Positions 35,063 through 39,445 of a DNA stretch of 64,000 bases are shown piece after piece. Position numbers and translations under genes: made by a program. The first letter of the stretch is position 1. The number at the start of each line of letters is the position of its first letter. This stretch comes from Lama guanicoe (Eukaryota), in assembly GCA_013239625.1 (NCBI GenBank), contig MU055488.1, positions 9,275 to 73,274 of the forward strand, given 5' to 3'. The notes beneath the pieces were generated by a model. That model was not told the origin of the DNA and made no database searches. It saw only the letters and a list, made by a program, of their open reading frames with translations.

Positions 35063-35161
35063 NNNNNNNNNNNNNNNNNNNNNNNNNNNNNNNNNNNNNN
35101 NNNNNNNNNNNNNNNNNNNNNNNNNNNNNNNNNNNNNNNNNNNNNNNNNNNNNNNNNNNNN
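35063..35161. other. Assembly gap (N run) inside the CpG island
   Basis: Run of N characters. Confidence 1.
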
Positions 35162-37025: not shown

Positions 37026-37992
37026 CTAAAACAAATGTAGGTAACGGGATGCCCCCACGAGTTCCAAAATGCAAGGGGATGGGGCCAAACCACAGACAGT
37101 ATAACACTCATGTGGGGCCAGCAGCCGGAGAGAGGTGGTGGAGGCAAGAGAAAGAGGAATTTCGATGCTGTCATGACTGGAGGACCCAGAAAATAGCCCC
37201 ACGGTAAGGGTCTGTCGAGATAAACTGGGGAAAGGCTTCACTGGCTCCAGGTCGAGGGCAAGTGCAGAAAGACTCAAAGGAGGGAGCTGGAGGCCCAAGG
37301 CCTCAGGGCTTGAAGAGATAAAAGTGTGTTAGGCAGAGAGGACCCAGCTTCCTTGTAACTGGAATCCCTGTTCCGTTACCTGCTGTGCTGATGGACCCCG
37401 AGACTTAGAGGTTCAGACAACAATGTTTACTCCTCCGTTCCCATGGGTTGGCTCGGTGGCTCTGGTCTGCCTTGGGCTCCCTGGGGGCTGCAGCCCCATG
37501 ATGGTCCCAGGTGGCTTCAGCCCCACATCCGGCATCAGTGCTGACGGTCGGCTGGACACCATGGCCCTTCTCCACAGGGGTCTCGTCCTCTCGGAGGCCA
37601 GGTCACCAGGCAGTGCTTCGAGAGCCGGGGGCCAGACCTGCTAGCCTCCCGGGGGCCTGGAGTTGTTCCTGGTAAGAGGAGTCCACGGTCAGCCTAGATT
37701 CAAGGCTCAGGTAGATGCACAGTGTTGTGGCCATGTCTTCCGTGTCCAGCAGCCCTCCAGAGCGGAGACGCCACAGCTCAGAACACTGCACCGAGATCGA
37801 AGGATACCTGCACCTGCGTGTTGACTGGGCATACCCCGTGCCTGGAGGATTTACCTGCAGCGACTTACACCAGGGAATCGCTCAGTAAACGTACCGGACT
37901 TCAGAGAAAATGAACGTGAGAAAGCCTTTGGGCACACGAGCAGCCCAGGTCATGTGCGGGGAGAGAGTCAGGTTGCATCAGATGGTTTTTTT

Positions 37993-38414
37993 CAGGCAAG
38001 AGGGTAGGATCTACGGTGGTCGTGAGTAAGGAGAGGGGACAGTGCCAAGGCTCTTGGGAGTCCAGGGGCCACGACTCAGGATATATCCGACCCCACAGCC
38101 ATCCGGGATGAGCTGCTTTTCTGCCACCACGTCTTCACGTTCATCTGCATTAAACTTGGTATGTCCCCACTTCCTGGAGCTCTGGGTCTAGGGAGAGGCA
38201 GGAAGAGCTGAGTCAGGAGGCCTGGGCATTGGGGCAAGGGAAGGCAAGCCCAAGGCTGCAGCACACTGACCTTGTGGCGGCCAGGGAACCTGAACTTGGC
38301 CCCGCATAGGGCCTCCATCACATGCTGCCTGTTCCGCAGCTGGTCCGGGTGGATGTGAGGCCTGGCCACCGTGCCCCGGGACTTTCCAGAGGCACCCGTG
38401 TACCTGTCTGGAGC
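37993..38414 (-). pseudogene. RPL10: RPL10 (uL16) pseudogene fragment: last two exons (38414-38271, 38187-~37993) plus a retained 83-nt GT-AG intron
   Basis: LQTG..GK..GTVARPHI...QLRNRQHVMEALCGAKFRFPGRHK|intron|[41 protein letters not shown]; 1-nt frameshift, ~18-nt deletion, no 5' exons. Confidence 0.9.
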
Positions 38415-38463
38415 CTAGACTGGGGACAGCATGAGGTCAGACATGAATGTCCACTGTGAAGGG

Positions 38464-38594
38464 CCATGTCCGGGTACCTTAGGGTGGCCCATGCAGGTAG
38501 CAGGCTGCACATACCACCGTGGAGGCTGTTGTTTGCAGACACTGCGCTCCAGGCCCCACGGAGAAAAGAGCATGGTGGGCTTAACTGGCTGCAA
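38464..38594 (-). ncRNA. SNORA70: SNORA70 (U70) H/ACA snoRNA retrocopy, diverged
   Basis: TTGCAGCCAGTTAAGCC...H box ACAACA (38532-38527)...GCAGCCTG...CCCTAAGG...ACA+3 nt end; ~131 nt. It lies upstream of the RPL10 exon, as in the native host intron. Confidence 0.8.
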
Positions 38595-39445
38595 AGGATC
38601 AGATATTGTGACAGAAGATAAGGGTCAGGGTCAGGGTTAGGGTCGGGAGATGTATTTAAAATACTCAGAAAAATAATGAATCAAGGATTTTGTATCCAGC
38701 CAAACTGACCTCTAGGTATAAAGGCCACAGACCAACTATTACAAACATCCAAGAACCAAGCCAGCTTTCTGGGGAATAAGCTTCAGCTGCAGCATCAGGA
38801 CAGGCGAAATCAAGTGACTGCAGGGAGGAAGTCCTGTCAGGAGTTCCAGCTGGAGACACAGGAGGGGCGACGGCACTGGACGGTCTCCACCTGGCGACTC
38901 TTTGGCGCTGGCTGGGTAACAGTGGTCAGCGGTTGTAAAACCACTAGGGTCCAGGGTGGATCTGACTGAGGCCCCCTGAACCCACTGGTCAGCCCAACAT
39001 CACTCCAGTGGGACAGCCAGACTTGAGTCTTCTAGAACCACCTGTGAGATATTGCCAAAAAAGGAAGCCAGACCCTTAGCACGCCTCCATCTCTGACCGC
39101 CTGCGTGCACAAGAATGGCAGGCACACGGAGGGCTGTCTTGAGAATACTGCCCAGCAAAGCCACAGTTTGGGAACCTGTACAAAACAAATCACTTGGATT
39201 TATCAACAAACACATTGGGAAAAAAAAAGCACAGCGGTTGTTGAAAATCAAAAGACCCTTAAAAAGATCCATTCCGAAAAATGCAGCTTTGGACCTTGTC
39301 TGGATCGGGTTCAAACAAGCCGCCTGTGGAAAGATTCCACTGACAGGAAGATCTGGACCTGAGCGACACCAGGGAATTACTTGTCTGGGTGTCAGAGTGC
39401 TGTTGTGGTCGTGCCCTGTTTTGGTAAGTCTTCATCAGAGATAAA

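Follow-up and report, generated by a model that had tools for sequence, protein, structure and literature searches.

In the window analyzed here (the whole stretch of Lama guanicoe DNA under study, 64,000 nucleotides), the minus strand carries a copy of the SNORA70 (U70) snoRNA, followed by two exons of RPL10 that still have an intron between them. This arrangement raises the question of whether the region was duplicated as DNA or copied from an RNA and, in the latter case, what kind of RNA was copied. A preliminary description had proposed a polyadenylated template that was 5'-trimmed to the snoRNA and still contained the unspliced last intron. All the parts listed in that description (SNORA70, 49 nt, an exon, 83 nt, the last exon with its 3'UTR, and an A7 run) are present on the minus strand at the coordinates and in the order that it gave. 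As detailed below, the element is an old, decayed retrocopy of the RPL10 tail that starts at the intronic SNORA70. It very probably belongs to the Type-3 U70/SNORA70 snoRNA retroposons, i.e., L1-type copies of RPL10-derived RNA, where the homology of the intron is judged by a translated comparison with one database ORF. For comparisons with related genomes, contigs of four public runs were compared with positions 37750–38850 at 80% likeness.

Read along the minus strand, the element is preceded by a target-site duplication, ATCTGAT (38604–38598), after which CCT (38597–38595) stands ahead of the start of the Rfam model. The SNORA70 model (RF00156) was matched at 38594–38462 over model positions 1–135 of 135, with 79.5 bits (E 1e-14; gathering score 40). 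Both the H box (AAACAA) and the ACA box (38469–38467) are intact, and the mature 3' end falls at 38464 (ACA plus 3 nt), so the earlier identification of an H/ACA snoRNA copy spanning 38594–38464 stands as a full-length Rfam match. Four model base pairs are non-canonical in the Rfam alignment. SNORA70 was the sole Rfam family found in the 64-kb window; the weak matches to MEG3_2 and MIR528 nearby (E about 0.5) were discarded as noise.

With model position 1 at 38594 and 3 nt between it and the duplication, the 5' end of the element coincides with that of the mature snoRNA, as had been claimed. The position of this end bears on the idea that a longer RPL10 pre-mRNA, unspliced or spliced in part, served as the template and that L1 reverse transcription stopped by chance at the snoRNA 5' end, i.e., an ordinary 5' truncation. 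Such truncation is common in L1-mediated copies, and truncated Type-3 copies were noted by Weber in the available text (PMC1687206). However, no more than 3 nt separate the start of the copy from that of the snoRNA, and a second SNORA70 locus in the contigs of the same genomes (80% likeness) loses its similarity to the element at the same base, 38595. The boundary is also family-wide, with the entire snoRNA present in 18/30 human copies according to the same source (PMC1687206), and a reverse transcriptase arrested by a snoRNP would stop on meeting the 3' side of the snoRNA, before its 5' side is reached. We therefore consider a chance stop at this base quite unlikely, and favor a template RNA that already began at the snoRNA.

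Downstream of the snoRNA, a remnant of the penultimate RPL10 intron (38463–38415, 49 nt) ends with ...CCCAGTCTAG and abuts exon 6, i.e., the whole parental intron 3' of the snoRNA was kept up to its AG, directly followed by the exon. This junction is common to many other copies in these genomes, as seen in the contig comparison, and an equivalent one is spanned by the database ORF P0004 (...LTSSYLQS|RLQTG, vs. ...LTSCCPQS|RLQTG in the window), the "R" of RLQTG being the product of the intron's final AG and the first G of exon 6. In P0004, P0006, P0011, P0036, and P0039, the similarity to RPL10 begins exactly at "RLQTG" and is preceded by unrelated residues; these entries are ORFs called on the U70-RPL10 retroposons of other animals and filed as proteins. 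Exon 6 itself (codons 110–164) occupies 38414–38271, and the limits previously assigned to the penultimate exon, including its start at 38414, hold. Its translation aligns to residues 116–164 of uL16/RPL10 with a six-codon deletion, while a 1-nt deletion close to the exon start moves "LQTG" to another frame, and the length bookkeeping is consistent with these losses (163 – 18 – 1 = 144 nt).

Between the two exons lies an 83-nt segment (38270–38188) with a GTCAGT donor, a final AG, a branch-point-like CTGAC 25 nt from its end, and 83% pyrimidines in its last 30 nt. Because the exon pieces, each searched on its own, align up to residue 164 and from residue 165 onward, these 83 nt fall precisely on the boundary of codons 164 and 165. 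In contigs of the same genomes, processed RPL10 copies have the "...GRQK" of exon 6 directly followed by exon 7, at 38187–38189. Among the contigs of the four public runs, none from other loci matched the intron or the greater part of exon 6 at 80% likeness, an absence that is expected for the intron if both introns drift. The contigs thus lend the intron no direct support at the nucleotide level and contain no clean 83-nt splice joint.

The earlier proposal depended on these 83 nt being the real last intron of RPL10, and this point was answered indirectly by a translated comparison. The natural read-through ORF (38414–38079) was used as query against a large protein collection and gave one match (P0148, 168 aa, from ENA), which aligns gap-free over 66 residues (E 1e-19), covering the part coded by the intron as well as exon 7 read out of frame. 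When compared alone with P0148, the 27 intron-coded residues gave 15/22 identities (E 0.002). A dynamic-programming frame-compatibility check was applied in order to establish which DNA could encode P0148. In the second frame, with 0 mismatches in 15 + 51 positions, the compatible DNA consists of the canonical end of exon 6 (EALRRAKFKFPGRQK), approximately 84 nt, and exon 7 in its complete canonical form, stop codon included, and it runs on beyond AATAAA with no A run. Given the mismatch-free exon 6 end, the intron of about 84 nt, exon 7, and the missing A run, P0148 would derive from a real intron-bearing RPL10 gene and must, judging by this computation, be an accidental ORF across the intact gene of a non-human mammal. 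This mammal has N at residue 202, where human-type chains show S. The frame-compatibility computation also overturned a different view of P0148, in which it was a decayed paralogue with I149M/R153C in common with the window; the first "M" of the ORF can be a TTG start. Since P0148 appears to come from a genuine RPL10 gene and aligns without gaps over the intron, the 83 nt of the window are, as far as a translated comparison with one ORF can tell, homologous to the true last RPL10 intron, with a length equal to within one base.

Exon 7 (codons 165–214) starts at 38187 and, together with its decayed 3'UTR, extends to 37993. It aligns from residue 165/168 to residue 206, with a frameshift close to its end, and is followed by the remnant of a poly(A) tail (37992–37984), made up of the A7 run (37992–37986) and CC, in accordance with the last exon, 3'UTR, and A7 of the preliminary description. 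The second ATCTGAT (37983–37977) lies 2 nt past the A run, and the first one is separated from the snoRNA by 3 nt. In samples of local sequence, a 7-mer pair situated no more than 5 nt from the two ends had a chance probability of 0.36%; ATCTGAT at both ends had also been given in the preliminary description. The insertion flanks read CACAAT|ATCTGAT on the 5' side and AAAAAAACC|ATCTGAT on the 3' side, with no clear TT|AAAA L1 target site visible at the insertion. Both the A7 run and the 7-bp duplication are short, as is expected for an old copy, and a longer, decayed A-rich duplication is possible.

A retained intron is also what a DNA copy would show, and a DNA-level duplication of the 3' part of RPL10, or a DNA duplicate of another such copy, was therefore weighed against these marks. 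A tblastn search with full-length uL16 (P0019 and P0015) found exons 6 and 7 and none of the other RPL10 exons in the 64-kb window, and so the upstream exons that might accompany a genomic duplicate are missing there. The element begins with the snoRNA and ends in an A run at the expected RPL10 poly(A) site, the whole is flanked by the 7-bp duplication, and at 80% likeness no other locus in the genomes of relatives matched the flanks or the intron. Homology to RPL10 thus stops at both ends, as the similarity of the second SNORA70 locus is lost on the 5' side and the A run and duplication follow on the 3' side. Together, the contig boundaries, the processed joints, and the limit at 38595 indicate that the ends of the element are RNA-defined. 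The rejection of a DNA duplication in the preliminary description is in line with these results, and we regard such an origin as exceedingly improbable compared with retroposition of an RNA.

Two organisms (A and C) carry the locus in identical or almost identical form, and it is also present, intron included, in a relative that is ~5.4% diverged (organism D, run X19), whose copy has a 16-nt deletion over the intron acceptor. The A7/CC stretch reads AAGAAAG in the ~5% diverged relative. Many other loci pile on 38401–38464 (intron remnant and exon 6 start) and on exon 7, which indicates that the genome has a family of such copies. The snoRNA-spanning stretch differs by 4–5% from the relative (records 22 and 15), vs. 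about 5.4% over 37750–38430 (record 17). The snoRNA thus diverges much like the flanks and the remainder of the element and shows no sign of selection. Exon 7 differs by 15–17% from RPL10 mRNA-like contigs (10/67, 15/88, and 20/125 bases), a divergence that would suggest an insertion age of tens of millions of years. Judged from these comparisons, the SNORA70 copy decays at the rate of its flanks and its guide function is predicted to be absent, the element being a fossil, neither a working snoRNA nor a gene, and the element as a whole, with its frameshifts and deletions, appears to have decayed neutrally.

What the template may have looked like follows from the order of the parts. Within the penultimate RPL10 intron, the RNA would have started where the SNORA70 snoRNP has its 5' end, or 1–3 nt ahead of it. 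From there it would have included what was left of this intron, exon 6, the last intron of 83/84 nt in unspliced form, and exon 7, and would have ended at the usual RPL10 poly(A) site. Bound H/ACA proteins probably shielded the 5' end from 5'-to-3' trimming, and the L1 reverse transcriptase would have used the poly(A) tail for priming when it copied the RNA into the site. The retained intron implies that the template was not the tail of a finished mRNA. The template of the preliminary description (polyadenylated, 5'-trimmed to the snoRNA, and with the last intron unspliced) remains the best reading, and nothing found in the window or in the related genomes contradicts it. On balance, we lean towards the retained intron being a real record of the order of processing, in which the RNA was cut to the SNORA70 snoRNP and polyadenylated before the last intron was spliced, and still reached L1. 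If this is true, the counts of intron-retaining vs. spliced snoRNA retroposons across mammals would provide a fossil measure of splicing escape and perhaps show where L1 meets snoRNA-started RNAs (nucleus or cytoplasm).

The same element could have been formed from a cytoplasmic template, with an exported RPL10 isoform that contained both the snoRNA intron and the last intron undergoing translation-dependent decay, the exonuclease stalling at the snoRNP, and the polyadenylated 3' fragment being copied by L1. Here the contest with a nuclear unspliced intermediate is only over where and how the template was formed, as the class of the element is shared by both. In the available text of a 2025 study (PMC12152556), snoRNA-retaining transcripts occur in full-length and 3' forms, part of which are cytoplasmic; translation-dependent decay is cited for the 3' form of NOP56-SNORD86, and 3' forms of RPL10-SNORA70 were seen among poly(A) long reads. 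On the other hand, the same text gives a frequency of 0.0002 for the retention of non-snoRNA introns, so that an exported isoform with double retention would be rare, and the DNA gives nothing that separates this route from the nuclear one. We hold the cytoplasmic route to be a tenable possibility, though a tentative one. Of the earlier label of an SPA-like transcript or processing intermediate, the snoRNA-ended, polyadenylated, unspliced template is thus retained, but both a nuclear intermediate and a cytoplasmic decay fragment would leave the same fossil.

With regard to the surroundings, four minus-strand ORFs in 24000–64000 match Pfam Cybc1_Eros (best E 8e-20), which places a CYBC1 gene in the window and fits the UTS2R-OGFOD3-HEXD-CYBC1 neighbourhood of human. 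In Pfam scans of the 276 plus-strand ORFs of the window, none matched Glyco_hydro_20 (HEXD), and HEXD, named as the host gene in the preliminary description, is a putative host at most. A GC-rich stretch at 34.5–36 kb (GC 0.61–0.63), within which a 99-base N run occupies 35063–35161, could be a promoter CpG island. Closer to the element, 16 nt upstream of the 5' duplication, four telomere-like hexamers are found at 38621–38644, (AGGGTC)4 on the plus strand and CCCTAA/CCCTGA on the minus strand, which may be due to chance. A contig of run X15 (organism D, about 5–6% diverged), a run judged to be RNA from its uneven depth, joins 38158 to 38700 on the plus strand and skips 541 nt with GT..AG ends. 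The window retains both sites of this joint (CTTG|GTATGT and TATCCAG|C), and its donor lies within the antisense of RPL10 exon 7. It seems that an apparently non-coding plus-strand transcript uses the 3' part of the retroposon (37977–38158) as an exon and splices out the rest. A similar case, an antisense exon from a human U70 copy, is given in the available text of Weber (PMC1687206). The element flags a possible host transcript with an exon and a splice donor that are antisense to it.

Several known systems share features with the element. Semi-processed retrogenes, such as rodent preproinsulin I, keep one parental intron from an incompletely spliced RNA. They are like the element in having such a template and in the single intron kept, but start at or near the mRNA 5' end and not at an intronic snoRNA. 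The SPA RNAs derive from the Prader-Willi locus and use C/D snoRNAs. As lncRNAs that are snoRNA-ended at the 5' side and polyadenylated at the 3' side (PMC12084880), the SPAs have the architecture inferred for the template of the element.

The closest relatives are the snoRNA retroposons described in 2006. According to the available text of Weber (PLoS Genet, PMC1687206), U70 sits in the penultimate RPL10 intron, which specifies the earlier statement that it is hosted in an RPL10 intron, and 30/42 human RPL10 processed pseudogenes are "Type-3 U70 snoRTs", which also occur in rat, mouse, elephant, and rabbit and are often intronic. The proposed model was that the pre-mRNA is cleaved, an exonuclease trims it up to the snoRNA, and the 3' part is spliced and polyadenylated. 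The element shares with this class the start at the snoRNA 5' end, the whole downstream intron, the poly(A) at the host site, and the target-site duplication. Its sole departure is that the last intron is still present between the last two exons, which are joined in the Type-3 class described there, and this class also substantiates the earlier remark that snoRNA retroposons with host exons are known and usually spliced. Luo and Li (2006, NAR, PMC1802619), in the text available, derived H/ACA copies, e.g., U70m and ACA40, from "partially processed, exon-containing hnRNAs", with U70 as the most copied H/ACA snoRNA (21 copies). As in the element, the snoRNA, its 3' flank, and host exons were retroposed together via L1, but partial processing in that text refers to the intron piece kept with the snoRNA, and no retained downstream intron is described there. 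An intron-retaining Type-3 copy was found in neither of these texts (PMC1687206 and PMC1802619, as far as available), nor is a camelid or artiodactyl U70 copy given in the accessible part of the former.

The class of the element and the idea of its template have thus been known since 2006, the unspliced last intron being the one feature not covered by those descriptions; the preliminary description overrated the novelty, as the same kind of template was already proposed by Weber in that year (PMC1687206, available text). The element is one more U70-RPL10 snoRNA retroposon, in a lineage without an entry in Weber's catalogue, and for annotation purposes it explains a stray SNORA70 match and an RPL10-like ORF. 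Polyadenylated RPL10-SNORA70 "3'-snoRT" RNAs were detected in 2025 by nanopore reads and digital PCR, and such RNAs start about 2 nt ahead of the H/ACA snoRNA (PMC12152556, text available in part); whether their last intron is spliced is not stated in that text. The retained intron agrees with the current picture of snoRNA-ended polyadenylated RNAs without adding to it. These human-cell RNAs have the same architecture as the template inferred here, with a 5' offset of about 2 nt vs. ≤ 3 nt in the window, where the element is preserved as a DNA fossil.
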